From the IMG/VR virus record IMGVR_UViG_3300021964_009390, positions 62,001 through 126,000 of that record: a stretch of 64,000 bases of DNA, one strand, 5' to 3'. A program made the translations under genes and the position numbers. The notes under the pieces are model-generated. The model did not search any database and had not been told where the DNA came from. It worked only from the letters and a program-made list of their open reading frames with translations. Every line of letters starts with the position of its first letter. Positions within the stretch are counted from its first letter, which is position 1. Below are positions 1,946-50,569 of the stretch, in pieces.

Positions 1946-2020
1946 TATTATTGATGAATCTTAAAAAAAAATAAATACTATTATATCAATATGGACAGCT
2001 CGGGTGGAAAGATTTAACAA

Positions 2021-3591: not shown

Positions 3592-3594
3592 GGG

Positions 3595-4209: not shown

Positions 4210-4210
4210 G

Positions 4211-4780: not shown

Positions 4781-4892
4781 ACATATAATAATTCATGTTG
4801 CACCACCAAAGACTGACGATGAAACAAAATCTACCGTTGCGGAAAAATTTGCAAAAGACATTGAATATTTCGGATACAAATTTGGAGAATAA
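4755..4892 (+). pseudogene. 45-aa internally deleted sulfotransferase (N-terminal PSB loop fused to constant C-terminus)
   Basis: Translates MTTRLGRNKHIIIHVAPPKT-DDETKSTVAEKFAKDIEYFGYKFGE*; 5' part matches the start of the 5745 gene, 3' part matches the shared sulfotransferase tail. Confidence 0.75.
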
Positions 4893-4895
4893 GAT

Positions 4896-5675: not shown

Positions 5676-5744
5676 CTTTGATTGCCGGAAGTTATTTTTA
5701 CAATTCACACTTGTTACGAAGACGATACATTGATTCAGATATAA

Positions 5745-6767
5745 ATGAAATTTCCAATAATGAAAAATAAACATATAATAATTCATGTTGGACCAGCAAA
5801 AACTGGAACATCTGCATTACAATATTTTTTATTAAAAAATCGCGAAGAACTCGAGAAAGCTGGATACTATTATCCGGATCACCGGGTAGATCAAAACGGT
5901 GTAGGTGGAGGTCATGCGAATCCACGTAGATTTAATATTAAAAATATCATAAACAATTTTTTAGAATCAAATTCAAAACATCATACATTAATATTATCAT
6001 CAGAAGACTTCTTCGTAAAGATAAACGAACTCAATAAAATATGCGCAAGTATTAAGTTTGTCTCGTTTTATCGTTGTAGTATTTACCAGTCATTATCCGG
6101 TTATATTCAAAAAATAAAACGTAAAAATCAAACCGATAAATTTAAACGGCACAAAATAGATAGATCGCCTAATGATACCCACCTTGATAATTTGAAAATT
6201 AAAAATATTAATTACACAATAATTCCGTATATGTTCGATTTTGATAACACTTGGTCAATTGTTAATGAATTTTTGAGGTTTATTGATAATAGTAACGTAT
6301 TGAGTCATATGTATGAAAACAAAATAAAAATTGTGAATCCATCATACTGTATAGAGGCAATAGAACTTAAGAGGTTTATTAATAACAATATTAACGATAT
6401 CAACGTTGATAATAATAAATCTACCATACTTGAGTTGGATGTAATACTACAGAAATTTACAGAGGGTGTGAATGATTTTTCTTTTTTAAAAGATGAACAA
6501 TTTGAAGAAAATAAAAAAATAGAAATATTGTTTTTAGAAAATATAATTATAAATTACAAACAACCGCAATTGAAAGTGATTTTAAATCATATGCAAAAAT
6601 CTAAAAATAAAAAATTTATAACACAACAATTATCAAAACAACAAATTGTTAAAATAGTGAAACATATTGCAAATGAGGATATAAACATACTTAAAAATAT
6701 TTTGCCTTATATTTCAAAAGATACGAATAATCCAATATACATAGAGATTAAAAATATTATCGAATGA
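5745..6767 (+). CDS. Sulfotransferase-fold protein
   Basis: IIHVGPAKTGTSALQ, YYP, LILSSEDF; very AT-rich; start could be 5760. Confidence 0.7.
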   Translation: MKFPIMKNKHIIIHVGPAKTGTSALQYFLLKNREELEKAGYYYPDHRVDQNGVGGGHANPRRFNIKNIINNFLESNSKHHTLILSSEDFFVKINELNKICASIKFVSFYRCSIYQSLSGYIQKIKRKNQTDKFKRHKIDRSPNDTHLDNLKIKNINYTIIPYMFDFDNTWSIVNEFLRFIDNSNVLSHMYENKIKIVNPSYCIEAIELKRFINNNINDINVDNNKSTILELDVILQKFTEGVNDFSFLKDEQFEENKKIEILFLENIIINYKQPQLKVILNHMQKSKNKKFITQQLSKQQIVKIVKHIANEDINILKNILPYISKDTNNPIYIEIKNIIE

Positions 6768-18665: not shown

Positions 18666-18821
18666 TAGAGACGGTATTTGGTAGAGATTATGAAAGAACG
18701 GTTACAGTACATATGGTCGATCTGCTCCTTGTTCGTGGTTCTCCCGTGCATGTTGTGTGTGGTGATGTACGATGTCATGACAGAATGGATCTTCGCGCGA
18801 TATCGAGAGTGGAAAAAAAAG

Positions 18822-25898: not shown

Positions 25899-26048
25899 AT
25901 GATCAGAATAACCACACACATCATTTTAATGACAATGACACTCACCGGATTCCTCTGGTGGACACACACGCTGTGGCCGGCTTTCGAGATGGCGTACGAC
26001 TGCATCGTGAACGTGGTGAACCAGAACCTGCCGCCGGCCACTGAATAA
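25899..26048 (+). CDS. Small membrane protein
   Basis: Leaderless ATG after TTGCCA-17-TACAAT. Confidence 0.5.
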   Translation: MIRITTHIILMTMTLTGFLWWTHTLWPAFEMAYDCIVNVVNQNLPPATE

Positions 26049-26053
26049 TTGAC

Positions 26054-26353
26054 ATGATCACCATACGACAATTGAGACACATGCTGGATGTGGCGTGTGA
26101 ACAACACGAACTCACAGACGAGAGCGAGGTGAGGTTCATCACACGAGGCACGCACTCGGACGTGGTGCACTGGCAACTGGACAAATACACCAGCGTGGAC
26201 TGCAGCATGACGGATCAGATGGCGACGGTGCCTCCGGATCCATCGAACGGACCACCAGCTGACAGAAGGTTCGGAGCCGGAGTGTTGTTGCTGGGTGAGG
26301 AGTGCGTGATGAGATGCACGCCACAGGACATACTTGATCAACTTGACTGGTGA
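26054..26353 (+). CDS. Hypothetical protein
   Basis: Operonic ORF. Confidence 0.55.
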   Translation: MITIRQLRHMLDVACEQHELTDESEVRFITRGTHSDVVHWQLDKYTSVDCSMTDQMATVPPDPSNGPPADRRFGAGVLLLGEECVMRCTPQDILDQLDW

Positions 26354-26880
26354 ATGAGCCCGGTGTATTATAGACATGACTCGATCATCAGCTGCAGTGA
26401 CTCGGACCTGTCCACAATAGAATTTTGCGAACGTAACAATTATAAACAACACAAAATGAACAACATGATGAGACTATTAAAAGCGTTGGGTAATATAGCC
26501 CGTTACACCTGTCTGGGCTGGTACAACACGTACAATCACGTGATAGATTCGTTGGAACGACACGAGAACGTGTGTAAAAAGCGTGTGAATCGTGACAAAA
26601 ACACGGAAAAATATCAGAAAAACCAGCTGAATGAGGCGCCCAAGCTGTGAGAAACCTAGGAGCTTCATGGGAACAACCAGAAATACACGAAATACTAGGA
26701 AACAATTTAAACCAATGATACCACTACAGGATGAAAGGGCAACAAATAATATCCCCGTCCAGTGTAGTATGTATCCGGCAACTAATCATATGTCAACTGA
26801 AAAAAACAGGAGAAACAGTTGTTGCCATCTAATCATCTAGACTACATAATAATATAACAATCAGAAAACATTATCAGACC

Positions 26881-27099
26881 ATGCCAAGAACCAACACTCA
26901 AGCCGACTCGGCGCTAGCAGAAATGGTAGCAGATGCTGCCCCCGAGCAAACCTTCACACTGCAACAAATATCTGACAAGACCGGTCTGAGTGCCGAGCGA
27001 GTCAGACAGATCGAACGTCAGGCGCTACGACGATTCAGAAGCGGAATCGAGGACTGGCTCAAACGAGAAGGATTCGACGAGTACTTGCCAGACCTGTAA
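26881..27099 (+). CDS. Stand-alone sigma-70 region 4 HTH protein
   Basis: FTLQQISDKTGLSAERVRQIERQALRRFR matches sigma70 r4.2 (TL.E.G..F.VTRERIRQIE.KAL.KLR). Confidence 0.85.
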   Translation: MPRTNTQADSALAEMVADAAPEQTFTLQQISDKTGLSAERVRQIERQALRRFRSGIEDWLKREGFDEYLPDL

Positions 27100-27145
27100 C
27101 ACTTTCCCAAAGGCCGTCCCCACCTGATAATCCTGAACTAATCCC

Positions 27146-27181
27146 ACCTCTCGAGTCTGACGGCGCTCGAGAGGTTTTTTT
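27146..27181 (+). terminator. Rho-independent terminator
   Basis: CCTCTCGAG...CTCGAGAGG followed by T6. Confidence 0.75.
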
Positions 27182-27327
27182 GTGGTCGATTCAATCAACC
27201 TATTTGGTGGGACAGGTTGATAAAATGAAAAAATATCCACCTATCCCCTCCCACACAAACCATCACTCTACACTTTACTGTTGAGAAAAAAGTTGTCCTT
27301 TAGAGCAGCTTTTGATATAATTGTATT

Positions 27328-27420
27328 ATGTTCAGCGATAGAGGCAGTTAGAAAAAACAGACAGACCCACTTTCAGGGAAGGTGATTGAGTTTGCTGCTG
27401 TCCTATAATATCACGAATAT
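27328..27420 (+). ncRNA. Candidate rod-shaped small RNA
   Basis: Starts 6 nt after TTGTCC-17-TATAAT; only a 7-codon ORF; nested pairings ATGTTC/GAATAT, GATA/TATC, GGCAGT/GCTGTC, CAGAC/GTTTG, CACTTT/AAGGTG. Confidence 0.5.
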
Positions 27421-27461
27421 GGGGAGGACCATTCCGAAATATATATATATGGCCCACACAC

Positions 27462-27492
27462 AAAAAAAGAGTGGCCTGTTCTGACCACTCTT
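27462..27492 (-). terminator. Rho-independent terminator of the leftward island operon
   Basis: AAGAGTGG..CCACTCTT with T-run on the minus strand. Confidence 0.75.
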
Positions 27493-27517
27493 GACAGTTA
27501 TGGGTTAGGCTTAAATT

Positions 27518-27721
27518 CTACTGTTCTTCATCAACATCTCCACTTATATGGAACACACAATCCTCTTCTCCTGATCCTGAATGTTCTATAGAACTGATGA
27601 ACACACTACTATTACCATAATAGCTGGTTCGATGCTCTCCATCCAAACACACCTCAAATGAGATGTTGTCTGTATCTTGAAAATCTCTATCCAATCTCTC
27701 CTTCAATTCTCCTACTGTCAT
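27518..27721 (-). CDS. Small acidic early protein
   Basis: MTVGELKERL..; AGGAGG RBS. Confidence 0.7.
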   Translation of the reverse strand: MTVGELKERLDRDFQDTDNISFEVCLDGEHRTSYYGNSSVFISSIEHSGSGEEDCVFHISGDVDEEQ

Positions 27722-27722
27722 A

Positions 27723-27887
27723 TTATTTGTCCTCCTTACTGTAATCTGCAAATGAGTAGCTTTCAACACTATCCTGAATCATCTCCATCACAATATCAAA
27801 AGCCTCTTCTTCATCAAAATGATCTCCAGGAAATGTTGATTCAATTTGATCTATACATTCTTTAACTAATTCTTTTAACTTATCCAT
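27723..27887 (-). CDS. Small acidic early protein (54 aa, absent from ORF track)
   Basis: MDKLKELVKECIDQIESTFPGDHFDEEEAFDIVMEMIQDSVESYSFADYSKEDK; own TTGTCC-17-GATAAT promoter. Confidence 0.7.
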   Translation of the reverse strand: MDKLKELVKECIDQIESTFPGDHFDEEEAFDIVMEMIQDSVESYSFADYSKEDK

Positions 27888-27923
27888 AATTGTATTATCT
27901 TATAATTTGATCTAAAGGACAAC

Positions 27924-28091
27924 TTATTTGTAAAGTATGTCACTAAATTCATATTTCAAACTGTCTTTCAAATCCTCATAAACAGCTATTCTGATTCCTT
28001 CTTCTCCATAACTCTCATAATCTCCACTTCTCTTCAAATCAGCTCTCATCTGGTCCATCATATACTCTATCAATTCTTTCAACCTATCCAT
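27924..28091 (-). CDS. Small acidic early protein (55 aa, absent from ORF track)
   Basis: MDRLKELIEYMMDQMRADLKRSGDYESYGEEGIRIAVYEDLKDSLKYEFSDILYK; RBS AGAAAGGAAAGTT. Confidence 0.7.
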   Translation of the reverse strand: MDRLKELIEYMMDQMRADLKRSGDYESYGEEGIRIAVYEDLKDSLKYEFSDILYK

Positions 28092-28105
28092 AACTTTCCT
28101 TTCTA

Positions 28106-28345
28106 TTATTTTAAAACCTTATCTATTTCAGATTTAGCTACATCCTCAATAGCCATATTAGTATTTGTCATCACATTCTCTTCAGTATTCAACATCACTC
28201 CCTCTCTATCATCAGAAGAAGCTGCATCATACTCACCATCCTCCTCATTCATCTCTCTCAATTCAGTTAAGGATTGGAGATAGAATGTTTTGATGAAATG
28301 TTCAAACTGCTCAAAACTTATATCCTTTTCAGTATCAATTATCAT
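28106..28345 (-). CDS. Small acidic early protein
   Basis: Leaderless ATG after TTGTCC-17-TATAAT. Confidence 0.7.
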   Translation of the reverse strand: MIIDTEKDISFEQFEHFIKTFYLQSLTELREMNEEDGEYDAASSDDREGVMLNTEENVMTNTNMAIEDVAKSEIDKVLK

Positions 28346-28351
28346 AAAATG

Positions 28352-28453
28352 ATTATATGAAGAGCTGATGAAATGGACAACTTTTTCTCCCAGAAAAAAT
28401 CAGGTGCGCCAGGGAGAGAAAAAGTTGCAGGTTTGAGCAGTTTTCACTATCAT
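28352..28453. promoter_or_regulatory. Back-to-back divergent early promoters within a 12-bp inverted repeat
   Basis: CAACTTTTTCTC 28378-28389 / GAGAAAAAGTTG 28416-28427; -10 boxes at 28352-28357 (-) and 28448-28453 (+). Confidence 0.8.
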
Positions 28454-28459
28454 GTTAAT

Positions 28460-28579
28460 ATGGAAAGAGAATATTACATAATGGAAGTAGAAGGAGCAGG
28501 ATGTTATTGTTTATGTTATGATGATGTAGATGGTAATAGAGTTGTTGTGGATTGGGATTTAGAGATAAGGGAGGACTAA
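28460..28579 (+). CDS. 39-aa acidic early protein
   Basis: Leaderless ATG; only 3 C in 120 nt. Confidence 0.65.
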   Translation: MEREYYIMEVEGAGCYCLCYDDVDGNRVVVDWDLEIRED

Positions 28580-28642
28580 AAGTTGTCCTTTTTGCTAGGA
28601 GGATTTAAAATAAGATTTTAAATTAGTAAAGAAAGGAAAGTT

Positions 28643-28813
28643 ATGAGAGAAGAATTGAAAAAGATTTTAGTGATTAGTTTGTATGATGGAAGTAATGAGA
28701 TTGATGAAGTGGATGAGGAGATGATGAGAGAGATTGAGAGGAGTAGTGAGAAGTGTAAGAAGGGTGATAAGGTGATTTGGATGGATGAAGAGTTTATGTA
28801 TTTGGAATTGTAA
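28643..28813 (+). CDS. 56-aa acidic early protein encoded without any cytosine (absent from ORF track)
   Basis: MREELKKILVISLYDGSNEIDEVDEEMMREIERSSEKCKKGDKVIWMDEEFMYLEL; promoter TTGTCC(28583)-17-TAAAAT, RBS AGAAAGGAAAGTT. Confidence 0.75.
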   Translation: MREELKKILVISLYDGSNEIDEVDEEMMREIERSSEKCKKGDKVIWMDEEFMYLEL

Positions 28814-28851
28814 AAGTTGTCCTTTTCAAATGATCACCTTATAATTAGAGC

Positions 28852-29067
28852 ATGAAAAGGATTAGAAGTTACAGTTTTGGATATGATATTGACAACATTA
28901 AAGATGTGCAATCTTATGTGATTGACAATTATGATGAAGGAGATTACAACATCCATATTGCTAGAGGAGATGATGTGATGAATTATATGACAATCTTGAG
29001 AGGAGAAGATGAGGAGTTGGATGGATTGATCGACAGTTGTTATGGTGAGGGTGATTTTGAAGAATAA
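28852..29067 (+). CDS. Highly acidic small early protein
   Basis: Leaderless ATG after TTGTCC-17-TATAAT; Asp/Glu-rich. Confidence 0.7.
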   Translation: MKRIRSYSFGYDIDNIKDVQSYVIDNYDEGDYNIHIARGDDVMNYMTILRGEDEELDGLIDSCYGEGDFEE

Positions 29068-29106
29068 AAAGTTGTCCATTTGAGCAGCAGACACTATTAT
29101 CATAAT

Positions 29107-29322
29107 ATGGAAGAAGAAAACAACATATGGGAACAAATGGAAACGCACATGCACGAGAATCTGGGAACGTACGGACTCAAGATGATGGATGCATTTTTAG
29201 ATTTGAAAGAATCAGCTGAAGATTGCGGAATGTGTCCGCAAGACACTCCTGAACGTCAGGAACGATTTGAACAGATGAATGGAGAGGCTCATGCTCCAGG
29301 AAGCAGACAACCATCTGAATAA
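29107..29322 (+). CDS. Small acidic protein with CxxC
   Basis: Leaderless ATG after TTGTCC-17-TATTAT. Confidence 0.65.
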   Translation: MEEENNIWEQMETHMHENLGTYGLKMMDAFLDLKESAEDCGMCPQDTPERQERFEQMNGEAHAPGSRQPSE

Positions 29323-29362
29323 AAAGTTGTCCATTCAAGCAGCAGACGCTATTATATAAACA

Positions 29363-29479
29363 ATGAAGATAAGATCTACGATACGCGCCAAGGCCACTCA
29401 GGCCCACGCACGACACAACAAGACGCTGGATCGTAAGCGCAAACACAGGAAGGATTATAAGTTATGTTCACAATATTAA
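29363..29479 (+). CDS. 38-aa basic peptide (RKRKH motif)
   Basis: ATG 7 nt after TATTAT; MKIRSTIRAKATQAHARHNKTLDRKRKHRKDYKLCSQY. Confidence 0.45.
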   Translation: MKIRSTIRAKATQAHARHNKTLDRKRKHRKDYKLCSQY

Positions 29480-29658
29480 GAGGAAAGACCGCCATCATCG
29501 ACTGTCAAGATCTACAAGCCGCGATACGATTCGTGCAGAGTCTGGAGAGCGGAATGAATCGTCACAAGGATCATTCACCATACACCATCGTCAAGGCGGA
29601 GGATGTGGAACGACCAGGTGTGAAGATCGGAGCACCTGACGCGTTCGTCACAAACTAA
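29464..29658 (+). CDS. Hypothetical protein
   Basis: AAGGA RBS. Confidence 0.55.
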   Translation: MFTILRGKTAIIDCQDLQAAIRFVQSLESGMNRHKDHSPYTIVKAEDVERPGVKIGAPDAFVTN

Positions 29659-29744
29659 AAGTTGACCGTCTGAGCACCAGAGCATACAATTAAGAATAAT
29701 CAGGCAATCAAGCCATCAAACAAAATATAAGGAAAATAACAGTT

Positions 29745-30074
29745 ATGTCAAAAGGAAAAAACACTCGCAAAGCAAAAGTATTTTACACATTACAAGACGC
29801 GTACGGCAAGGACGTGCGCATCGACTTGAACAACTATCGAGTCATCTGCAACAAGACCGGCAAACGCAAGAGCTTCTATCACAAGTACTTGTTCAATCTG
29901 ATCAGTCGCAAGTACGAAAGCAACATCGATCGCTTCAGAACCGAGTATACTAGCAGAGAGGCCGCTCCCAGCAAGAACGAACGACGCGCCAAGCAGCTTC
30001 AGGCACGCATCGATCGTCTGTACAACCAGATTCGAGAGCTCAAAGCCACAAGAAACGAGCTGGTTGTTGACTAA
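29745..30074 (+). CDS. Basic hypothetical protein (C..TG..Y..Y.SREA), related to 40983
   Basis: Promoter 29662-29690, AAGGA RBS, terminator downstream. Confidence 0.7.
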   Translation: MSKGKNTRKAKVFYTLQDAYGKDVRIDLNNYRVICNKTGKRKSFYHKYLFNLISRKYESNIDRFRTEYTSREAAPSKNERRAKQLQARIDRLYNQIRELKATRNELVVD

Positions 30075-30099
30075 ATTTCTTCCATAACTGATCCTAACC

Positions 30100-30138
30100 A
30101 GGGGCTGGTGAATAGAGTAGCCAGCCCCTCTTGTTTTT
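30100..30138 (+). terminator. Rho-independent terminator
   Basis: AGGGGCTGG...CCAGCCCCT followed by CTTGTTTTT. Confidence 0.7.
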
Positions 30139-30176
30139 AAGTTGACATCACCCATGAAACATCATACAATAAACAT

Positions 30177-30806
30177 ATGAAAACGATAACCACACTAGTC
30201 ACTCTGATGATCGTGTCAGTTGCATCAGCAGCGATCATCGACCGAAACAGGGACGGCATCCCTGACACCACTCGTGAATGGAACGTGCCAGAGTTCACCG
30301 ATCAGAACATTCATGGATTCACACCCAGCGACTCGTTGGCAGGAGCGTTACGAATGGCAGCACGCAACTCGCTGGAGCCTGATCCGTTCGGTGCCGACAC
30401 AACCAACACCAGAACACGACCTTTGACTCCTGATCAGAAACGATTGAACGAGCAGCTGTTGGCCAGATACAAACAAGAGTTAGAAGCTCATCTGAACAAC
30501 ATCACTCCTGAACCAGATGAGGACACGCTGCAGGCTCAGATCGCTCGATTGAACCAAGAGTATGTGAACCGAGCTGCAGAACTTGACCGAGTGATTCAAC
30601 TGGATGGTACAGTGGTGACACGTGACAACACTGACGCCAACTCGACTGGTCAATCATCCGCTTACGAATCAGATTCAGAATCGAATCAACTGGCCATGGC
30701 CGCCATTGGAGGTGGAGGCTTGCTTGCCGGACTCGCCAGTGGTGTTGTGGCATGGAGAAGGCGTCGAGAAACTGACCCGGCTGCTCTAGAAACAACCACG
30801 CTCTGA
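30177..30806 (+). CDS. Exported protein with DxNxDG Ca-binding-like loop and C-terminal TM plus RRRR anchor
   Basis: Signal peptide ..VASA; DRNRDGIPD; AMAAIGGGGLLAGLASGVVAWRRRR. Confidence 0.7.
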   Translation: MKTITTLVTLMIVSVASAAIIDRNRDGIPDTTREWNVPEFTDQNIHGFTPSDSLAGALRMAARNSLEPDPFGADTTNTRTRPLTPDQKRLNEQLLARYKQELEAHLNNITPEPDEDTLQAQIARLNQEYVNRAAELDRVIQLDGTVVTRDNTDANSTGQSSAYESDSESNQLAMAAIGGGGLLAGLASGVVAWRRRRETDPAALETTTL

Positions 30807-31024
30807 GACCACAACACTCTCTGAGACTCAACCTGGTCTAGACCACAGGGTATGAAACTTTGTGATATACAGGCCAGGTTTGGTGTGTTCGAAAATGTGC
30901 ATGGGAAAATTTTTTTGCGCGATTTTTTGAGGCATGTATATAAGCGGTTTTGCCTGGTCCACGACCACCACGACCTGAGCGTAGCGAATGTAGATTATTG
31001 CATCTCGGAAACATAAATAGCCAC

Positions 31025-31360
31025 ATGACACAACCCATGATCGAATCTATCGGACTAGTCGCAGGTGCCACTGGTCTGATCGCGTGGATACCACAGTTAC
31101 AGACAGTGTGGTTCAAGCGAGAACACCGAGGTGTGAATCGAGGCACTCTGATGATCATATTCACAGCGTTGTGCATGTGGTGTGTGTACGGAGTGTTACG
31201 AGAGGCCTGGGCTGTATGTGCGAGCAACGCATGCAGCGGCATGCTGGTGGCCACGATATTCGCCCGTGTCACCTGGCTCAGATCACAGCAAACAGCACCA
31301 GATCCGGACATCCAACAGTACGAACAACACATCGTGAGCACCGACTCATGGGAGACATGA
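31025..31360 (+). CDS. SemiSWEET/PQ-loop (MtN3) transporter
   Basis: IGLVAG...IAWIPQ; G(V)N..T; MWCVYG; SN; three TM helices; TAAATA-5nt-ATG. Confidence 0.8.
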   Translation: MTQPMIESIGLVAGATGLIAWIPQLQTVWFKREHRGVNRGTLMIIFTALCMWCVYGVLREAWAVCASNACSGMLVATIFARVTWLRSQQTAPDPDIQQYEQHIVSTDSWET

Positions 31361-31425: not shown

Positions 31426-32016
31426 ATGCTGAGCCATGAACATAAGTATATTTTTCTCCATGTACCCAAGTGCGGAGGTTCTTCTGTAGTTGCAGCACTG
31501 TCGAGACACCCACATAGCAAAAAATTCAAAACTGGGCACCCGGTGCTGGCTAGTTACTTCGATGAGTTCGGTGATAATGTCCGGGATTACTTTATTTTCT
31601 CCATTGTGAGGAATCCGTTCGCAAGAGCGGTCAGTGCGTTCAAGTACCTTCAAAAAGGAGGAAGTAAAAGTTCATCAGACATAAGAGACCGAGATCAATT
31701 TGACATGAAAGGCTTGGATTTTAATAAATTTGTATTGAAATATTTTGACCAAAAAACACCTCTACATTTTCGTTCTCAAGCGGCATTTATAGGTGAATAT
31801 TTTAAACATGTAGACTATATTGGTAAACTCGAAAATATACAGTTGGATTTTGATAATATTTGTGACAAAATTGGAATCTCAAGAAAAAAACTTCCACATG
31901 TGAATAAAACCAATCACTTGCATTACACCGAGTATTATGATGATGAAACTCGTGAACTTGTTACAGAACGATACGCAAGAGATATTGAATTGTTTGGTTA
32001 CGAATTTGGTGAATGA
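31426..32016 (+). CDS. Sulfotransferase family 2
   Basis: FLHVPKCGGSS, VRNPFARAVS, HFRSQ, shared tail. Confidence 0.9.
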   Translation: MLSHEHKYIFLHVPKCGGSSVVAALSRHPHSKKFKTGHPVLASYFDEFGDNVRDYFIFSIVRNPFARAVSAFKYLQKGGSKSSSDIRDRDQFDMKGLDFNKFVLKYFDQKTPLHFRSQAAFIGEYFKHVDYIGKLENIQLDFDNICDKIGISRKKLPHVNKTNHLHYTEYYDDETRELVTERYARDIELFGYEFGE

Positions 32017-32630
32017 TATATGGACCTCGATGTATGAAGAAAACAATTTATATAAGGATGCCAAGATGTGGATCTTTTACAGTGGTCAGTCTTTGTGAAA
32101 AAAATAATATTAAATATTACGGTGGTAGAGATATGGGTTTTTGGAACTATAATACAAACCATACAAAGAATACTTCACCGAAACTGTACAAATGCGTAGA
32201 AAACTATGTAAATGAAAAAGTGTATAATGAAAGTTTCATCTTTACAACTGTAAGGAATCCGTATTCCCGTGCAGTTTCAATGTATAAACACGAATCATGG
32301 GACTCCGCGAGAACTTTCAGCGACTTTTGTAATAAACTTATAAGAGATGAATACCCTTCAAAATTTGCAAAATGGCATAGCTCCACCTTGACAGAGCATA
32401 TTGTCGATAAGGATATTCTCAAAGTTGATTTTGTAGTCAAACTTGAAAATTTTCAACAAGACTTCGATACGGTCTGCGACAAAATAGGGATACCACGTCA
32501 ACAACTTCCACATGAAAACAAATCAAAACACAAACACTACACCGAATACTATGATGAAGAAACAAAACAAATTGTTGCGGAACGATACGCACGTGACATC
32601 GAGTTGTTCGGGTATGAATTTGATAAATAA
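32013..32630 (+). CDS. Sulfotransferase family 2
   Basis: YIRMPRCGS, VRNPYSRAVS, shared tail. Confidence 0.88.
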   Translation: MIYGPRCMKKTIYIRMPRCGSFTVVSLCEKNNIKYYGGRDMGFWNYNTNHTKNTSPKLYKCVENYVNEKVYNESFIFTTVRNPYSRAVSMYKHESWDSARTFSDFCNKLIRDEYPSKFAKWHSSTLTEHIVDKDILKVDFVVKLENFQQDFDTVCDKIGIPRQQLPHENKSKHKHYTEYYDEETKQIVAERYARDIELFGYEFDK

Positions 32631-32635
32631 CTAAC

Positions 32636-33364
32636 ATGAAAGCTATAGTGCAGAGTTGCGACAGATATCACAGTATGGCTCAAAACATGCTGGTTCAATA
32701 CGAAAAATTATGGCCATCTAATCCTTTTACATTCAGGGTCCCATGGAATGAAAAATATCCAGAAGTTATAGAAAATCAATTTGGAAGTAAAATAGAATTA
32801 ATTAACGCTGGAATTAAATTTAAGCAAACATTTCATGCACTAACTAAAGATCTTGATGACAATGACTGGGTTTATTGGTGTATTGATGACAGATACCTAA
32901 TAAGCATTGAAGAAGGGGAAGCTAATCAAGTTCTTAATTTTGTAGAATCAATTAAAAACCCTAACATCATTAATGTGTGCTTTCATTTTGTCAGGTATAT
33001 AAAAGATTCTGCAAATTGTATACAAAGAGAAGGCTCAGGTGTAGAAATTTATTTTGAAAACTTGAGATTTATACAACACAAATCTTTTATCAACAATTGG
33101 TTGCACCAATTTTTTAGAGTTAAAGCGTTAAGAGAGTTCTGGAGGCACATAGAAGAGCCACCTCAATATCAAGCCATACAAATGGATTACAGCACAAAAC
33201 CTTTAAATGGAATTTCTTTAACTTTAGACCATAATATATCCAGGTACGGAGAAAGCACGGAGGGGGGAACGATCACAAAAAATTGTCAAAATAGTTGTAT
33301 TGAAAATAATATATCAATCCCAAAAATTTTTTTATCAAAAAAACAAAAAACAATTATTATTTAA
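32636..33364 (+). CDS. Putative GT-A-like glycosyltransferase
   Basis: VQSCDRY, WP, VYWCIDDRY (DxD-like); AT-rich cargo gene. Confidence 0.5.
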   Translation: MKAIVQSCDRYHSMAQNMLVQYEKLWPSNPFTFRVPWNEKYPEVIENQFGSKIELINAGIKFKQTFHALTKDLDDNDWVYWCIDDRYLISIEEGEANQVLNFVESIKNPNIINVCFHFVRYIKDSANCIQREGSGVEIYFENLRFIQHKSFINNWLHQFFRVKALREFWRHIEEPPQYQAIQMDYSTKPLNGISLTLDHNISRYGESTEGGTITKNCQNSCIENNISIPKIFLSKKQKTIII

Positions 33365-33367
33365 AAT

Positions 33368-33400
33368 CAGGACATTGAGTATTTTGGGTACGAATTCGAA
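33368..33400 (+). repeat. Orphan copy of the sulfotransferase 3' constant sequence
   Basis: 30/33 identical to 34006-34038 (encodes QDIE.FGYEFE) but intergenic. Confidence 0.8.
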
Positions 33401-33462
33401 CAAACGTCCAAAAAAGAATGGTAATACAGTAATGGATCAGGCTAAATAATTATATTATTAAT

Positions 33463-34044
33463 ATGATCAACCACAAACACAAATTTATTTTTATTCACAT
33501 ACCAAGAACTGGTGGGACTAGTATAGAGCAACAGTTTAGTTATAATGGAGATCGTTCTGGAGACGGAAAAAAACATTGGAATCTAGATCAATACAAAGAT
33601 GTATTATCCAACGAACAATTTGATAATTATTTTAAATTCACTTTCATCAGGAACCCCTGGGATATTGTAATTTCTAAATATATGGATAGAGGTTGGTATT
33701 CTAGCCCCATCAAAGGAAGGGGCGGTAAAATTGGATATTATTCCGGGCAAAAGTTAAGTTATTTTTTAAATCATTATCAACCCGCCAGACATGAGTATGG
33801 AGATAGTTTTTTTGATTATTTCAACCCCAAACAAATTGATTTTGTTGGCCGTTTTGAAGATAGAAGGAAAGGTTTAAATTTTATATCAAAAAAAATCGGC
33901 ATTAATCTTAATCCTCAAACTAAATCTAGATCCAATTCTGACAAAAAACACTACACCGAATACTACGATGATGAGACAAGACAAATGGTTGCGGAAAGAT
34001 ATGCACAGGACATTGAGTTGTTCGGGTACGAATTCGAATCGTGA
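33463..34044 (+). CDS. Sulfotransferase family 2
   Basis: FIHIPRTGGTS, IRNPWD..IS, VGRFE, shared tail. Confidence 0.9.
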   Translation: MINHKHKFIFIHIPRTGGTSIEQQFSYNGDRSGDGKKHWNLDQYKDVLSNEQFDNYFKFTFIRNPWDIVISKYMDRGWYSSPIKGRGGKIGYYSGQKLSYFLNHYQPARHEYGDSFFDYFNPKQIDFVGRFEDRRKGLNFISKKIGINLNPQTKSRSNSDKKHYTEYYDDETRQMVAERYAQDIELFGYEFES

Positions 34045-34856
34045 ATATAAAAAATATTAATACAATTAAGTTATTTTCTGATCCACTGTTCGATGCGCAT
34101 TTTTCTGTCGATCCTGGTTCTAAATTTTTAATATTTAAATCAATAGATTTTAAAACGGTAAGTGCTACATTAAAAGTAGATCCGGTGAGTCTGGTTAAAT
34201 TTTTAAACGATATATGTATGGAGATGTATAGAAATGGTAAAACTAATGGTATACCTCGAGATGTGTCGATAAATTTACATGATCATTATTTTTGTGCGGA
34301 AACTATAAGAGATATATATTCAGGTATTATTTCTGACCTGCTAGCGGACAATAGTGAATGGAGTACAAACGAAATTGTTTCATTTGGGTTTTTATGCGGT
34401 AACACTAAACCTCAAAGATTGAAATACATTGAAATGGGTAAAAGTTTTTCTCAACTAAACTACATATCGACAAAAAAATACAATAGGTACTCCAAAGATA
34501 CAGACGGCTTCACAAGCGTGATAAAATTAAAAAAAGATTATAAGTATTTTATCGATTTAACCGGTCATAGCTACAGTACTAAAACATATCAATTTCTAGC
34601 ATCCAAACGCGTATACTTCACTTCTAAACATAATGAGATTTTAGACTGGGAAGCAAATCACTTAAAACCCTGGGAAAATTACATCCCGGTTGAAGATGAT
34701 CTTTCAGATCTTATAAGTAAATATCAAACAATAGAATCAAACCCGGTATTATATAAAAAAATTATTAAAAATAATACCAATTTGATAGCAAATCAACTCT
34801 CTCATAAATTAATGTTACAGCATTTAATAAAGACTATTTCAGCGTACATTATATAA
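34041..34856 (+). CDS. Glycosyltransferase family 90 (CAP10-like)
   Basis: YKYFIDLTGHSYS....L, LKPWENYIPV..DLSDL. Confidence 0.75.
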   Translation: MNIKNINTIKLFSDPLFDAHFSVDPGSKFLIFKSIDFKTVSATLKVDPVSLVKFLNDICMEMYRNGKTNGIPRDVSINLHDHYFCAETIRDIYSGIISDLLADNSEWSTNEIVSFGFLCGNTKPQRLKYIEMGKSFSQLNYISTKKYNRYSKDTDGFTSVIKLKKDYKYFIDLTGHSYSTKTYQFLASKRVYFTSKHNEILDWEANHLKPWENYIPVEDDLSDLISKYQTIESNPVLYKKIIKNNTNLIANQLSHKLMLQHLIKTISAYII

Positions 34857-34903
34857 ATATAAGGAAGTTGAAAAATAATCAATTGTAGTTAATTATATAT
34901 ATT

Positions 34904-34975
34904 ATGAGAGTAGCTGTAACTGGAACTGCGTGTGTAGGTAAAAGCACATTTGTGAATGATTTTTTAAAAAATTGA
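34904..34975 (+). pseudogene. Truncated P-loop kinase/ATPase N-terminus
   Basis: MRVAVTGTACVGKSTFVNDFLKN*: intact Walker A then stop. Confidence 0.65.
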
Positions 34976-34976
34976 T

Positions 34977-35612
34977 ATGAACATCAATTTATATGTGTCA
35001 TACTATAAGGATAAAATAAACGAGAGGAATCTGGAGCTAGAGCAGTGCCTGCTCGGTAATCTAACCAATGCCGCGGTAGACAACGTATATCTGCTAGCTG
35101 AAAACACCCCACCAAAACGGTTTCGGACTAACAGTAAAGTCACTGTCATACCACATAAACGACCCACGTTCACCAATTTTTTCAACATTGTGAACGACAC
35201 AACAGGTGCAAAGGATCTGAACATAGTCGTGAACAGTGACATCTACCTACCGGACAACATCGCGGACATACACCCTCATGTGAGTATGGACACAGTAGCA
35301 TGCATGTCCCGGTGGGAGTTACAATCTGATGGTTCGCTTGTACAGGCACGCGGACCACGTGGTGACAGCCAGGACGCGTGGATGTGGAGAGGCAAGATTC
35401 GCGAGGTGGATTACAGTGACTTCAACCTGGGTGTACTGGGTTGTGACAATCGAATAGCCTGGGAGTTCATGAACGTGGGTTATCGATTGATAAATCCATG
35501 CGAGACATTCAAAATAGCCCATGTACACAACTCCAAAGTCAGAAATTACAGATACAATGATCTGAATGACAAAGTGTCTGGACCATACCAGTTTGTGTCA
35601 CATAGCGCATGA
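34977..35612 (+). CDS. Putative glycosyltransferase-like protein
   Basis: VVNSDIY, SRWE, DSQDAW, LG..GCDNRI, HVH. Confidence 0.6.
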   Translation: MNINLYVSYYKDKINERNLELEQCLLGNLTNAAVDNVYLLAENTPPKRFRTNSKVTVIPHKRPTFTNFFNIVNDTTGAKDLNIVVNSDIYLPDNIADIHPHVSMDTVACMSRWELQSDGSLVQARGPRGDSQDAWMWRGKIREVDYSDFNLGVLGCDNRIAWEFMNVGYRLINPCETFKIAHVHNSKVRNYRYNDLNDKVSGPYQFVSHSA

Positions 35613-36199
35613 TAAGTCACGAGCATAAATTTCTTTTCATTCATGTGCCACGGACAAGTGGTAGCAGCATCGAGATACAGTTTAAATACAACGATGCAGG
35701 TATGTGGATGGTAAACTATGATGGTCGTAAGCATTGGACATTGAACCAATGGAAAGAACATTTAGAACCGGAAGTATTTGAAACATATTTCAAATTCACA
35801 ATTGTCCGGAATCCTTGGGACCGGGTAATCAGCAAATATTGTACACGTAATGAGTTTGGACCGATCGGACAACCGGCCGGAAAATCACTGAAATATTTTC
35901 TAGACAATTACAAAACTCCCGGGAACGAACATGGAGAGACCTTGATTGATTATTTCGATCCGGAGCAGATGGATTACATCGGTAGATTTGAATCTAGAGA
36001 GGACACATTAACATATGTGTCACAGAAAATTGGTGTAGAAATAGACAATAGCTACAAGCTTAGACCAGTACAAGCCACGATCAAGCAACAAAACGATAAC
36101 CATCATTACACCGAATACTATGATGAAGAAACAAAACAAATTGTTGCGGAACGATACGCACGTGACATCGAGTTGTTCGGGTATGAATTTGGTGACTAA
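35609..36199 (+). CDS. Sulfotransferase family 2
   Basis: FIHVPRTSGSS, VRNPWDRVIS, IGRFE, shared tail. Confidence 0.9.
   Translation: MISHEHKFLFIHVPRTSGSSIEIQFKYNDAGMWMVNYDGRKHWTLNQWKEHLEPEVFETYFKFTIVRNPWDRVISKYCTRNEFGPIGQPAGKSLKYFLDNYKTPGNEHGETLIDYFDPEQMDYIGRFESREDTLTYVSQKIGVEIDNSYKLRPVQATIKQQNDNHHYTEYYDEETKQIVAERYARDIELFGYEFGD
36107..36191 (+). repeat. 85-nt perfect direct repeat of 32538-32622
   Basis: TACACCGAATACTATGATGAAG...GGGTATGAATTTG identical in both copies. Confidence 0.9.
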
Positions 36200-37859: not shown

Positions 37860-38732
37860 ATGAAACTCAAGAGAAAAATTTTGATAATGGGGCTCCCGGG
37901 TGCAGGTAAAACTACACTGGCGGAATTGTTGGTACAAAAGCTATGCGCAGTGTGGTTCAATGCGGACGCTGTTCGTCAAGAGATCAGCAAAGATCTTGGT
38001 TTCACAGCAAATGATAGACTAGAGCATTCACGACGCATGGGTAAAATGTGTGAATTCGCTAGTAAATTCGGAACCTGGGCCATAGCCGATTTTGTATGTC
38101 CCACCAATAAAGCTAGAGAGCTGTTCGATGCAGACTACATAATCTGGGTGGATCGAATCAAGGAAGGTAGATTTGAAGATACAAACAAGATGTTCGAACC
38201 ACCAGCGAATGCAGATCTTGTGTTGAGAGACGGTACACCACAAGAGTGGTTGGAACAGTCCATGGATCTTTTGAAACCGGAGCTATGGGACAATCAAGCT
38301 CCAACCGCGTTGTTGATTGGCCGTTATCAACCATTCCATAAAGGACATAAAACACTAGTGGCCGAAGCCATCAAACGTACCGGGCAATGCTGCATAGCTC
38401 TTAGAGACGTGGGGGGAAAGGATGATAGTAATCCATATGACTTTCAGCAAGTGAAACGTGAGATACACGCGGCATGTCCGGAGTTTGGTGACAAAATAAA
38501 AGTTGTCGAGCTCCCCAACATCACCGATGTATTTTACGGTAGAGGTGTGGGTTACAACATAGAACAACTGGAACTAGACAAGAGCATCCAGGAAATATCG
38601 GCCACCAAGATTCGCAAAGGTGAGATAGACCAACAAGGTAACAAATTGAACAAAAACACAGGTGGTCACAATCCGTTCACTGGAGAAGGTCTCCAAGTTG
38701 ACACACAAAACACAGACCGACGTTACGAGTGA
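37860..38732 (+). CDS. cysC: Adenylyl-sulfate kinase (CysC-like) fused to HIGH nucleotidyltransferase
   Basis: MGLPGAGKTT, NADAVR...DLGFT..DR, FVCP, FEPP; second domain IGRYQPFHKGH ... ISATKIR. Confidence 0.8.
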   Translation: MKLKRKILIMGLPGAGKTTLAELLVQKLCAVWFNADAVRQEISKDLGFTANDRLEHSRRMGKMCEFASKFGTWAIADFVCPTNKARELFDADYIIWVDRIKEGRFEDTNKMFEPPANADLVLRDGTPQEWLEQSMDLLKPELWDNQAPTALLIGRYQPFHKGHKTLVAEAIKRTGQCCIALRDVGGKDDSNPYDFQQVKREIHAACPEFGDKIKVVELPNITDVFYGRGVGYNIEQLELDKSIQEISATKIRKGEIDQQGNKLNKNTGGHNPFTGEGLQVDTQNTDRRYE

Positions 38733-49867: not shown

Positions 49868-50569
49868 TTATATAGTCGTTACGGCATGTTGATACAGCTT
49901 CATATCTAATGAATTGTGCATCATCTCACTAACTATCTGTCGCTCAAATGGTGTAGTGTTATTATTTTTTTGCCGGTTGAGTATTTCTAGCTTGCATGTT
50001 TGTTTATTTTCAATTTTAAAATCAGTGCATATATTTTTAATTACTTCTGTAAGTTGATCGTTTATTTTTTCTAGAATTAACGTGTATGTTATATTGTCAT
50101 AATCTTTACATATTGTATCTATATCATTGGATTGACTTACATACTCACACATCAAACTGGAGTAAGATAAACAGTATTTTTTGAGTGTTTCAGCCGGTAA
50201 CCTTCTCATAGGTTTATTGTCGAATTTAACTTTGTCAAAATAGTAATAATGACTTATCAAACGATCGACCGGATGTCTCAACACACATAATGATTTGCAG
50301 CTGTCAGATCTAGTGACTACATCATTGTTTTTTGTGTGACATAACACTATTTTTATCTGTTCTAAATGTTCATTCAACACCCCCATTGCAGCTACGTAAT
50401 CATCATTTGTGGTTAAATTTATACCCTTGTAATCGCAGTCACCAAACAGTGTTTGCGGAAAGTATATCTGTTGATGGGTGTATTTTGTAATAAATGCTTT
50501 GTATAGTAGTGAACGTACGCTAGTACCACCGCATTTTGGTATATGATAAAATATAAATTCCGGATTCAC
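49868..50569 (-). CDS. Sulfotransferase family 2
   Basis: FYHIPKCGGTS, LRHPVDRLISHYYY; lacks the shared 3' tail. Confidence 0.85.
   Translation of the reverse strand: MNPEFIFYHIPKCGGTSVRSLLYKAFITKYTHQQIYFPQTLFGDCDYKGINLTTNDDYVAAMGVLNEHLEQIKIVLCHTKNNDVVTRSDSCKSLCVLRHPVDRLISHYYYFDKVKFDNKPMRRLPAETLKKYCLSYSSLMCEYVSQSNDIDTICKDYDNITYTLILEKINDQLTEVIKNICTDFKIENKQTCKLEILNRQKNNNTTPFERQIVSEMMHNSLDMKLYQHAVTTI

Follow-up and report, generated by a model that had tools for sequence, protein, structure and literature searches.

Nearly cytosine-free sense strands in a conserved array of tiny acidic, presumably early genes of a marine jumbo phage

Several kinds of phage locus are known in which very small genes are clustered behind promoters recognised by the host polymerase. 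The hyperplastic regions of T4-type phages consist of arrays of very small genes of unknown function organised in PeSL (promoter-early stem-loop) cassettes, in which each gene has its own conserved early sigma-70 promoter, and gene content and order are shuffled between close relatives with the repeated promoter as the likely recombination site (PMC2839356, PMC4122927). The SPO1 host-takeover module, the T5 pre-early (first-step-transfer) genes and the T7 class I genes, including Ocr, are clusters of small, often acidic proteins expressed first from strong host-polymerase promoters, in part divergently arranged as in SPO1 and T5, and located in terminal repeats or at the entering end of the genome. 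At the level of nucleotide composition, the sense strands of bacterial genes are enriched in purines and poor in C relative to G, with pyrimidine-rich antisense strands, and this bias, which bends codon and amino-acid usage, has been explained by avoidance of the termination factor Rho, since Rho loads on C-rich, G-poor RNA and a purine bias with low excess C lets genes escape it (Dierksheide et al. 2026, PMC13323073). Furthermore, some mRNAs escape mRNA interferases because the recognised motif has been purged from them at the expense of codon and amino-acid choice, such as ACA-less mRNAs and MazF or the GCU-less mqsRA and MqsR. The locus analysed here shares features with each of these systems, but it differs in that a whole base, cytosine, is removed from the sense strand of a handful of mini-genes, and no nuclease matching such a specificity is known.

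The locus lies in a 64,000-nt stretch of IMG/VR record IMGVR_UViG_3300021964_009390 (positions 62,001 to 126,000 of that record), referred to as the window, whose coordinates are used throughout. Four leftward genes (L1 to L4) and four rightward genes (R1 to R4), encoding proteins of 39-79 aa, diverge from about 28400. The island and its borders comprise the following features.

26881..27099 (+), a stand-alone sigma-70 region 4.2 protein of 72 aa with normal composition (Pfam Sigma70_r4 at 4.5e-9; best PDB sequence matches region 4 of RpoH and RpoD, 5e-6), the last gene of the upstream operon, found at the same position next to the island in the related loci L011, L015, L024 and L028
27146..27175 (+), intrinsic terminator closing the upstream rightward operon, an 11-pair stem followed by TTTTTTT
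27293..27321 (+), promoter P1 (TTGTCC-17-TATAAT), pointing towards the leftward genes and conserved in five lineages
27328..27492 (+), candidate structured non-coding RNA made from P1, with an almost invariant core at 27366-27436; among 26 distinct copies two inner-hairpin pairs show 3-4 pair types each with none broken and the terminator stem also covaries, whereas the ORF is not conserved
27467..27492 (-), intrinsic terminator of the leftward operon, a 10-pair stem followed by a T-run on the minus strand
27518..27721 (-), L4, 67 aa from the ATG behind an AGGAGG, pI 4.12, about 10% C (21/204 nt from codon counts; 22/216 nt with upstream bases), dN/dS 0.09-0.20
27723..27887 (-), L3, 54 aa, pI 4.05, 8.5% C, leaderless, a paralogue of L2 (36.5% identity, E 3e-6)
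27894..27922 (-), promoter of L3 (TTGTCC-17-GATAAT), with the ATG 6 nt after the -10
27924..28091 (-), L2, 55 aa, pI 4.53, 5.4% C (9/168), dN/dS 0.04-0.21
28106..28345 (-), L1, 79 aa, pI 4.10, 9.6% C, leaderless, with 98 homologue clusters in metagenomes
28352..28380 (-), promoter of L1 (TTGTCC-17-TATAAT)
28425..28453 (+), promoter of R1 (AAAAGTTGCAGG...TATCAT), with the ATG 6 nt after the -10
28460..28579 (+), R1, 39 aa, pI 4.05, 3 C in 120 nt, the most conserved island protein (CYCLCYDD...DWDLEIRED), dN/dS 0.05-0.09
28583..28611 (+), promoter of R2 (TTGTCC-17-TAAAAT), followed by a C-free leader with a Shine-Dalgarno site, AAAGGAAAG
28596..28820 (+), a 225-nt C-free run reaching from the R2 promoter spacer through the transcription start, the leader and the whole R2 gene to the -35 of the next promoter
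28643..28813 (+), R2, 56 aa, pI 4.40, 0 C in 171 nt, a protein that uses none of P, H, Q, T or A
28817..28845 (+), promoter of R3 (TTGTCC-17-TATAAT), leaderless
28852..29067 (+), R3, 71 aa, pI 4.05, 6.9% C, with 41 homologue clusters and a predicted beta-alpha-beta-beta-alpha fold
29072..29100 (+), promoter of R4 (TTGTCC-17-TATTAT)
29107..29322 (+), R4, 71 aa from the ATG (80 aa from the TTG used in the sequence-only reading), pI 4.37, of normal composition (17.6% C, 8 CG), marking the right edge of the C-depleted block

The sequence-only reading had described a divergent island of tiny acidic genes with mirror-image C depletion, and this observation is confirmed, all its counts being reproduced, and is in fact stronger than first described. 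The 3 C in 120 nt of 28460-28579 and 9 in 168 nt of 27924-28091 were recovered as claimed. The C-free run of 225 nt is the longest in the window, where the longest one outside the island is 58 nt, and the longest G-free run is 77 nt (28054-28130). The dinucleotide CG occurs 5 times in 27400-29100, and 3 times in 27518-29067 against 22 GC. No CCGG is present between 26981 and 29857, although the window holds 270; however, CCGG-free gaps of 2.6 and 2.2 kb also occur in other low-GC blocks of the window and hence this gap is largely compositional. The motif AAAGTTGWCC occurs 7 times, all within 27289-29667, against 0.3 expected, and one more TAAGTTGTCC lies on the minus strand at 27925. Overall, nine to ten AAGTTG-type promoters are located within 27.3-30.2 kb. 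The earlier claim that the TTGTCC variant is seen only in this region needs one correction, since only this subtype is confined to the island, while the wider AAAAGTTG...TAnnnT promoter class occurs 17 more times in the window by a loose pattern, about a dozen of them convincing, mostly at 10-25 kb and upstream of normal-composition sequence.

Seven of the eight genes have 0-10% C on the coding strand, against 18-27% (23% overall) in neighbouring genes, and all eight proteins are acidic (pI 4.05-4.53). When 31 island genes from 5 genomes are pooled, C amounts to 5.8% against 23.3% in normal genes, with G at 0.271 and T at 0.31 against 0.21, and C is depleted at all three codon positions. CpG is depleted ten-fold beyond composition (observed/expected 0.10), whereas GpC is at 0.50. 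Codon choice is altered to the same end, as GAT:GAC is 207:36 against 60:89 in normal genes, Arg uses AGR in 71 of 72 codons and TGT:TGC is 43:0, while P, H, Q, T and A together make up 6.5% of residues against 23%. C-ending codons are avoided six- to ten-fold specifically before G-starting codons. Along the rightward array C rises from 0-3% to 4-7% and then to 14-20%. The remaining Cs show no strong position effect within genes beyond the first 30 nt. Folding energy of the fully C-free R2 mRNA is -0.053 kcal/mol per nt against a background of -0.233, and hence it is nearly structureless, but L4 and L1 fold about as well as ordinary genes, so that an explanation by RNA structure holds only for the fully C-free mRNAs.

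The island genes are real, since dN/dS is 0.04-0.33 with dS from 0.2 to above 2, and the ORFs stay open in at most 1.2% of shuffles. More than 60 related marine and estuarine phage loci keep the depletion, which points to selection on the RNA itself; 60 distinct genes homologous to R1 carry 0-6 C, and 25 of these 60 loci have C-free runs of at least 200 nt. The C-free runs start in or just after a promoter and end at the next -35 in the window and in the related loci L011, L014, L024 and L028, reaching 521 nt over three genes in L024, where the unit is driven by the same promoter type as R1. The depletion follows the coding strand when gene order changes, as in L008/L009 all island genes lie on one strand and are still C-poor on their sense strand. 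However, in L024 and L028 a gene with C 0.19 and 12-16 CpG sits between C-free genes, driven by a near-identical promoter, and R3, when moved outside the array in L017, rises to C 0.117 with 5 CpG. Similarly, R4 to R7 and a dozen or so AAAGTTG-class promoters elsewhere in the window go with normal composition. As R4 and R5 are leaderless and driven by TTGTCC promoters, neither leaderless translation nor promoter class explains the depletion.

Compared with T4-type hyperplastic regions, the locus likewise has a repeated promoter, found 5-8 times in each related locus, and gene sets and order differ between the window and L009, L011, L015, L017, L024 and L028. However, no stem-loop joins the cassettes, the only terminator-like hairpins being those at 27146-27175 (+) and 27492-27467 (-), and C-free RNA cannot form a G-C hairpin. 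PeSL cassettes have not been reported to show strand-specific base depletion, and the phage is unrelated to T4 at the sequence level. The early regions of T7, T5 and SPO1, to which the sequence-only reading had likened the island, contain no gene below 13.5% coding-strand C (range 13.5-26%), have a GC skew of 0.03-0.15 and C-free runs of at most 57 nt. With respect to Rho-avoiding bacterial genes, the sense strand here also has G well above C, but that bias is genome-wide and moderate, whereas here it is confined to a few mini-genes and goes to 0% C, T is raised rather than lowered and CpG is specifically avoided. The interferase-evading mRNAs lack one 3-nt motif only. Literature searches did not reveal any description of whole phage genes and operons that do without one of the four bases.

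Searches for relatives and functions gave little. With blastn (words of 11 bases) no DNA match for 26800-30200, and no tail-protein match, was found in 50,697 phage records, and the closest ribonucleotide reductase, from Acinetobacter and Pseudomonas phages, is only 47% identical. PHROGs, Pfam, PDB sequences and the ESM Atlas gave no informative match for the island proteins, Rfam found nothing in 26500-30500, including the candidate RNA, and the exact promoter pattern found no other multi-copy locus in IMG/VR. Of the two proteins modelled, L1 reached only pLDDT 60, too poor to judge its fold, while the confident R3 model (pLDDT 79) has no significant PDB match, the best one being ACT/PII-like with E 0.12, and a profile of R3 found nothing in PDB sequences. 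The best viral structural match of R3 is an uncharacterised protein of Cellulophaga phage phiST (E 3e-3), but tblastn found no sequence link and the first 50 kb of phiST hold no C-free genes, only the mild G-over-C skew of a 30% GC genome.

Taken together, the island is best explained as a fast-shuffling array of mini-gene cassettes in an uncultured marine or estuarine jumbo myovirus with contigs of about 222-230 kb, in which each cassette pairs a host-type sigma-70 promoter of the AAAGTTG family with an acidic protein of 39-79 aa, most cassettes being leaderless with the ATG 6-7 nt after the -10, and in which gene-specific selection acts against cytosine, and against CpG above all, on the sense strand, reshaping both codon choice and amino-acid content. 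The analysis itself establishes the depletion, its delimitation by transcription units, its persistence over saturating synonymous divergence, its dependence on gene and array position rather than on promoter class or region, and purifying selection on the genes. On the other hand, the reason for the selection, including any dependence on Rho, is inferred, as are the probable roles of the proteins in host takeover or counter-defence, and early timing is inferred from the promoters and from weak RNA-library evidence, namely that contigs of relatives from an oligo-dT RNA-seq library cover 27355-29690 but not the flanks, which fits an expressed early module. The preferred mechanism, held only tentatively, is that C-less, CpG-less RNA cannot be stopped, since it would offer no C-rich loading site for Rho, could not form the G-C hairpins needed for intrinsic termination or for masking a 5' AUG, would lack C-G pause steps and would not wait for CTP, usually the scarcest NTP. 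Mini-proteins would thus be made as fast and as reliably as possible in the first moments of infection, and the complementary C-rich, G-free antisense RNA would be an ideal Rho substrate, which would insulate the divergent units from each other. In T4, Rho restricts transcription to immediate-early RNA when translation is absent (PMC2988021). However, Rho needs roughly 80 nt of RNA and then time to act, so that for genes of 120-240 nt with their own promoters the gain from removing every C is not obvious, and the remaining Cs are not depleted in the YC context that Rho binds (TC observed/expected 1.21, CC 1.74).

A less likely but possible alternative is the evasion of a C-directed attack at the nucleotide level, whereby C-less transcripts could be made and survive when CTP is depleted or poisoned, for example by the chain terminator ddhCTP that prokaryotic viperins produce, or in the presence of a C-specific endoribonuclease or a C-to-U deaminase acting on phage RNA, with the C-less genes as the counter-measures that must be expressed despite the attack. 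Whole transcription units with exactly zero C are what an agent charging a cost per C would select, and more than Rho avoidance needs; the rise of C along the rightward array fits a priority order, the graded depletion is expected if each C carries an independent risk, and many known viperin-bearing bacteria are marine. However, no C-specific RNase, RNA deaminase or CTP-depleting defence is known to be present at the moment of infection, and inducible defences would act after immediate-early transcripts have been made. Moreover, all other phage genes, including early ones, contain normal amounts of C, the left-arm genes still carry 9-23 Cs each, literature searches found no precedent, and none of the mini-proteins resembles an enzyme that could detoxify such an attack.

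A purely mutational origin is unlikely. In this view, strand-specific C-to-T deamination of the exposed non-template strand, caused by very heavy transcription, R-loops or a host single-strand DNA deaminase, drove C out without selection, and it would account for the replacement of most of the lost C by T, for the richness of the proteins in Y, C, V, I, M and F, which C-to-T changes produce from H, R, A, T, S and L, and for the flip of the skew with the direction of transcription. However, the normal-composition gene has stayed inside the array in two lineages whose L1 proteins have diverged to about 55-59% identity, and R7 has the same promoter class yet 44% C at third codon positions. At Gly four-fold sites the lost C is replaced by A and not T, as GGA rises from 31% to 57%, and promoter Cs are retained. 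These findings, together with the avoidance of C before G and the purifying selection, argue against it, and a regional mutation bias was rejected because of the mosaic arrangement.

The interpretation offered by the sequence-only reading, an anti-defence or DNA-mimic module in site-depleted DNA at or near the leading end of the genome, is only partly supported. The divergent cluster of tiny acidic genes, most with their own sigma-70-type promoter, holds, and an anti-defence or host-takeover role is still plausible as an inference from sequence, but the remainder is unlikely. In its favour, a strand without C cannot carry any recognition site that contains both G and C, there is no CCGG in 26981-29857 and only 3 CpG in 1.55 kb, all the proteins are strongly acidic, as expected of Ocr/ArdA-type DNA mimics, and several metagenomic contigs break within 1-4 kb of the island. 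However, these breaks fall at different positions, as expected from strain variation. The location of the ends had been set as a test, and although contig ends are not proven physical ends, two contigs of about 222 and 229 kb place the island 132,001 and 132,072 bp from one shared end and 90.5 and 96.6 kb from the other, and it is also interior in a 173.8-kb contig. The depletion is of C on the sense strand and not of restriction sites. AT-only palindromes are at expectation and GATC (6) and AGCT (7) are present, which, with the gene carrying 12-16 CpG inside the array of relatives, led to rejection of restriction avoidance as the driver; besides, a cut anywhere kills the phage, and hence protecting 1.5 kb is useful only if that stretch enters first. 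As for DNA mimicry, nothing matches Ocr or ArdA in sequence, and the predicted R3 fold, the only confident model among the eight proteins, is not like either. Finally, a replication origin or R-loop-forming zone is very unlikely, since, although the GC skew changes from -0.20 to +0.20 at about 28 kb with origin polarity, strong divergent promoters flank the centre and G-rich RNA on a C-rich template favours R-loops that could prime bidirectional replication, the depletion persists without any mirror in the co-directional L008/L009 lineage, the skew is confined to 1.5 kb and follows individual genes, the sequences are conserved as proteins, and no G-clusters typical of R-loop initiation zones were seen on reading the sequence.

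A further possibility, unlikely on present evidence but not excluded, is that C-less transcription units represent a previously unrecognised kind of viral counter-defence written into base composition, in which a set of first-response genes is built so that it can be transcribed and stay intact without using cytosine at all, and would hence be immune to CTP depletion, to CTP-analogue chain terminators such as ddhCTP, to C-specific RNases or deaminases and to Rho. If so, base-free genes would be a searchable signature of what a host attacks. In any case, long one-base-free ORF-bearing runs behind promoters provide a sequence signature for finding immediate-early takeover genes in uncultured phages. 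The feature is conserved in a widespread marine phage lineage, costs preferred codons and five amino acids, and has edges that coincide with transcription-unit boundaries. Therefore, some process that reads C in RNA, or C during RNA synthesis, must in this view matter strongly in the first moments of infection, and its identification would reveal a new constraint on early viral gene expression or a new axis of the phage-host conflict.

The window belongs to the 222,461-bp contig IMGVR_UViG_3300021964_009390, with window positions corresponding to contig positions minus 62,000, and derives from an uncultured tailed jumbo phage encoding a baseplate hub, a tail-sheath stabiliser, a class I ribonucleotide reductase and two tRNAs. 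No DNA or tail-protein match was found among 50,697 deposited phage genomes, and public runs that hold the island are estuary and marine metagenomes. The window also carries at least nine sulfotransferase genes, an APS-kinase/cytidylyltransferase-like protein and several glycosyltransferases (GT1, GT61, GT90) at 1160-6767, 31426-36199, 37860-38732 and 49868-50569, mostly in low-GC (27-35%) blocks, which is an unusual phage-borne kit for making sulfated glycans, and relatives also carry Caps_synth, Glyco_transf_25 and UDP-glucose dehydrogenase genes. The observation made in the sequence-only reading, a divergent cluster of tiny acidic genes with C-poor coding strands and few CG and no CCGG sites, was confirmed, as every count given there was reproduced. 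The island and its immediate surroundings comprise the following features:

26881-27099 (+), a 72-aa protein consisting of sigma-70 region 4.2 alone
27146-27175 (+), terminator
27328-27492 (+), candidate structured RNA of about 165 nt made from promoter P1, with its core at 27366-27436
27492-27467 (-), terminator
27518-27721, leftward, L4, 67 aa, 10.2% coding-strand C
27723-27887, leftward, L3, 54 aa, 8.5% C
27924-28091, leftward, L2, 55 aa, 5.4% C
28106-28345, leftward, L1, 79 aa, 9.6% C
28460-28579, rightward, R1, 39 aa, 2.5% C
28643-28813, rightward, R2, 56 aa, 0% C
28852-29067, rightward, R3, 71 aa, 6.9% C
29107-29322, rightward, R4, 71 aa, normal composition

All eight island proteins have pI values of 4.05-4.53. 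From R4 onward coding-strand C is normal (17.6-25.8%), as it is in the gene preceding the island (27.4%). The longest C-free run in the window is 225 nt (28596-28820), while the longest outside the island is 58 nt, and CG occurs 3 times in 27518-29067 against 22 occurrences of GC. The CCGG-free gap 26981-29857 is real, but since gaps of 2.6 and 2.2 kb occur in the other low-GC blocks of the window, it is mostly compositional. Outside this gap, the palindromes CCGG and CTAG are over-represented 1.76-fold and 1.74-fold over maximal-order Markov expectation, which for CCGG amounts to 270 sites against 115 expected from base composition. As CTAG is usually avoided in bacteria and phages, this may point to DNA modification or to a recognition motif of the phage's own.

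These genes are real, since each ORF stays open in only 0.02-1.2% of shuffles of its own bases, and all three stop codons are C-free, so that open frames are hard to keep in such sequence. Pairwise dN/dS in five gene families is 0.04-0.33, with dS ranging from 0.2 to beyond saturation, and L2 and L3 are paralogues.

Concerning promoters, AAAGTTGWCC occurs seven times in the window, only within 27289-29667, against 0.3 expected, and a TAAGTTGTCC (minus strand, 27925) and an AAAAGTTGCAGG (28422) complete the set, which a consensus scan lists as TTGTCC-17-TATAAT-like sites. For L1, L3, R1, R3, R4 and the next gene (29363), the ATG lies 6-7 nt after the -10, and hence the mRNAs should be leaderless, whereas R2, L2 and L4 have Shine-Dalgarno sites. 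The two terminators bracket the left side. However, the wider AAAAGTTG...TAnnnT class is not special to the island, which corrects the sequence-only reading: a loose pattern finds seventeen more in the window, about a dozen of them convincing, mostly at 10-25 kb on the + strand and upstream of normal-composition sequence, with many sharing a conserved leader. Thus, the island lies inside a much larger early-type region, and only the TTGTCC subtype, the divergent orientation and the composition set it apart. A second promoter architecture, AAAAGTTGC(R)(S)G TTTGATC ... TACAAT followed by a conserved leader TAAGAATAATCAGAtAAC...AAGGA, is present at 18819, 19577, 22292, 22592, 24755 and 29659 (+), is repeated in front of many normal-composition genes, and may represent a shared translational or regulatory leader.

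In metagenomes, R3 has 41 and L1 has 98 homologue clusters. About 30 related loci were retrieved, followed by 80 more through R1 (related loci are designated by three-digit handles, such as L011). The architecture of a sigma-region-4 gene, a terminator, P1, four leftward genes and a rightward array recurs in L011, L015, L024 and L028. The region 4.2 protein, the helix-turn-helix that reads the -35 box, is conserved directly upstream of the island in relatives and could occlude or re-target AAAGTTG/-35-dependent promoters, for example to shut off early genes; a phage regulator that is a stand-alone region 4 is not known to us. The candidate RNA made from P1 converges on the leftward operon, and its core is nearly invariant in 26 distinct metagenomic copies, although neighbouring proteins diverge to 55-60% identity. 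Two of its hairpin pairs show 3-4 pair types each with none broken, the invariant part contains GTTGTCC directly abutting TATAAT, and no Rfam match was found.

The depletion is conserved in these relatives and is often stronger, with C-free coding-strand runs reaching 253 nt (L011), 295 nt (L014/L015), 290 nt (L017), 271 and 225 nt (L028), and 521 nt (L024/L025/L026/L056). Among 60 distinct R1 genes, the C count in about 117 nt is 0-6, and 25 of these 60 loci have a run of at least 200 nt. In L028 (5107-5382, minus strand), the 67-aa C-free gene family (MRERFDK...) carries an internal tandem duplication of about 24 residues (FDIGDFEKFKEYILNWDVLKRCVE, twice) and yet remains almost C-free (1 C in 276 nt). 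Pooled over 31 island genes from five genomes, C is 5.8% against 23.3% in 12 ordinary genes of the window, and the observed/expected ratio is 0.10 for CpG (9 against 88.5) and 0.50 for GpC. GAT:GAC is 207:36 as compared to 60:89 in ordinary genes, Arg is encoded by AGR in 71 of 72 codons, TGT:TGC is 43:0, and the residues that need a C in their codons (P, H, Q, T, A) make up 6.5% against 23%. C is depleted at all three codon positions. Furthermore, C-ending codons are specifically avoided before G-starting codons: as 41% of island codons start with G and about 135 codons end in C, about 56 such boundaries would be expected, yet only 9 CpG occur in all.

Five properties define what this pattern follows. 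First, it follows the sense strand, since in L008/L009 all island genes, including the L2 homologue, lie on one strand and are still C-poor on it. Second, it is delimited by transcription units: in the window, L011, L014, L024 and L028 the C-free runs begin inside or just after a promoter and end at the -35 of the next promoter, and the only Cs in these stretches are in promoter elements. Third, it is a mosaic, as in L024 and L028 a basic 110/111-aa gene (L028/L024) with a C fraction of 0.19 and 12-16 CpG sits between C-free genes and the R3-like gene in the same orientation, although its promoter (AAAGTTGCAGGTTTGATCA...) is almost identical to the one that drives the 521-nt C-free unit; the L1 proteins of these two lineages are about 55-59% identical to that of the window. 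Fourth, it depends on position, because an R3 homologue outside the array (L017 5215-5436) has a C fraction of 0.117 and 5 CpG, with seven synonymous T-to-C differences from the window, while an L4-like gene placed in the rightward array of L017 has a C fraction of 0.016. Fifth, along the rightward array C usually rises with distance, from 0-3% to 4-7%, then 14-20% and then 24%.

The interpretation offered in the sequence-only reading, an anti-defence or DNA-mimic module at or near the leading end of the genome, was only partly supported. R1 starts 132,001 bp from one end of the 222,461-bp contig (Ga0222719_10000014) and 132,072 bp from the corresponding end of an independent 228,717-bp contig (Ga0222718_10000012), with the other ends lying 90.5 and 96.6 kb away, and the island is also interior in a 173.8-kb contig. 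Several shorter contigs break within 0.2-4 kb of the island, but at different places, which is what strain variation in a hypervariable block would produce. The two independent assemblies thus end within about 70 bp of each other on one side and differ by 6.2 kb on the other, and this shared end, as judged from assembled contigs alone, suggests a fixed genome end or a terminal-repeat boundary far from the island rather than random circular permutation. In an oligo-dT RNA-seq library of a marine metagenome, contigs 85-95% similar to the window cover 27355-29690 and leave 26001-26776 and 29881-31238 empty, which is weak evidence but fits strong transcription of exactly the promoter-dense block.

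As far as protein function is concerned, family searches returned no matches. AlphaFold2 on a 41-sequence alignment gives R3 a predicted beta-alpha-beta-beta-alpha fold (pLDDT 79, pTM 0.65), for which the best PDB matches are insignificant (E 0.12, ACT/PII-like, TM below 0.5) and the best viral match is an uncharacterised protein of Cellulophaga phage phiST (E 3e-3, TM 0.68), a phage whose first 50 kb show no C-free genes. L1 models poorly (pLDDT 60, helical). Nothing supports a DNA mimic, and nothing excludes host-takeover or anti-defence roles.

In organisation, the island is closest to the hyperplastic regions of T4-type phages, where PeSL promoter cassettes shuffle small early ORFs (PMC2839356, PMC4122927), although it lacks their stem-loops, and in composition it is an extreme, gene-restricted version of Rho-linked purine bias. 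The classic early modules invoked in the sequence-only reading do not show the feature, since in the SPO1 takeover module, the T5 first-step-transfer DNA and T7 early genes the lowest coding-strand C is 13.5%, the coding GC skew is 0.03-0.15 and the longest C-free run is 35-57 nt. Searches of about 8.4 million papers and preprints found no description of phage genes or operons that lack cytosine. Hence, early takeover cassettes are as such already known, whereas the property of the putative takeover cassettes here is new and unexplained.

The depletion and its dependence on strand, transcription unit, gene and position are established by the sequence comparisons, and call for selection that acts on individual transcripts and reads cytosine, whereas the agent of this selection, the early timing of expression and any takeover or anti-defence role are inferred. 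One candidate is transcription that cannot be stopped. Rho is the known constitutive reader of C-rich, G-poor RNA, composition alone lets genes escape Rho (PMC13323073), and in T4 Rho limits transcription to immediate-early RNA when translation is absent (PMC2988021). C-less RNA also cannot form G-C hairpins and does not need CTP. It further avoids the C-G step, which favours pausing according to the elemental pause consensus. A second candidate is evasion of a C-directed attack, such as ddhCTP, CTP depletion, a C-specific RNase or a deaminase, which would explain why whole units reach exactly zero C. A regional or transcription-driven mutation bias is hard to hold, given the mosaic arrangement, the 44% C at third positions in R7, a further rightward gene behind the same promoter class, and the replacement of lost C by A rather than T at Gly four-fold sites. 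Neither promoter class nor leaderless translation is sufficient, as R4 and the rightward gene R5 have both and are normal in composition. Restriction-site avoidance is not the driver, because AT-only palindromes are at expectation, GATC and AGCT are present, and a CpG-normal gene lies inside the array in relatives. A replication-origin skew does not fit the co-directional arrangement in L009. Of the candidate agents, unstoppable transcription and a combination of both are favoured, but only with modest confidence, since Rho should matter little within genes of 120-240 nt, the residual Cs show no YC avoidance, and only the fully C-free mRNAs are structure-poor. In the combined view, every feature of the cassettes, namely a tiny ORF, its own strong promoter, no leader and no C, would shorten the time from DNA entry to finished protein.
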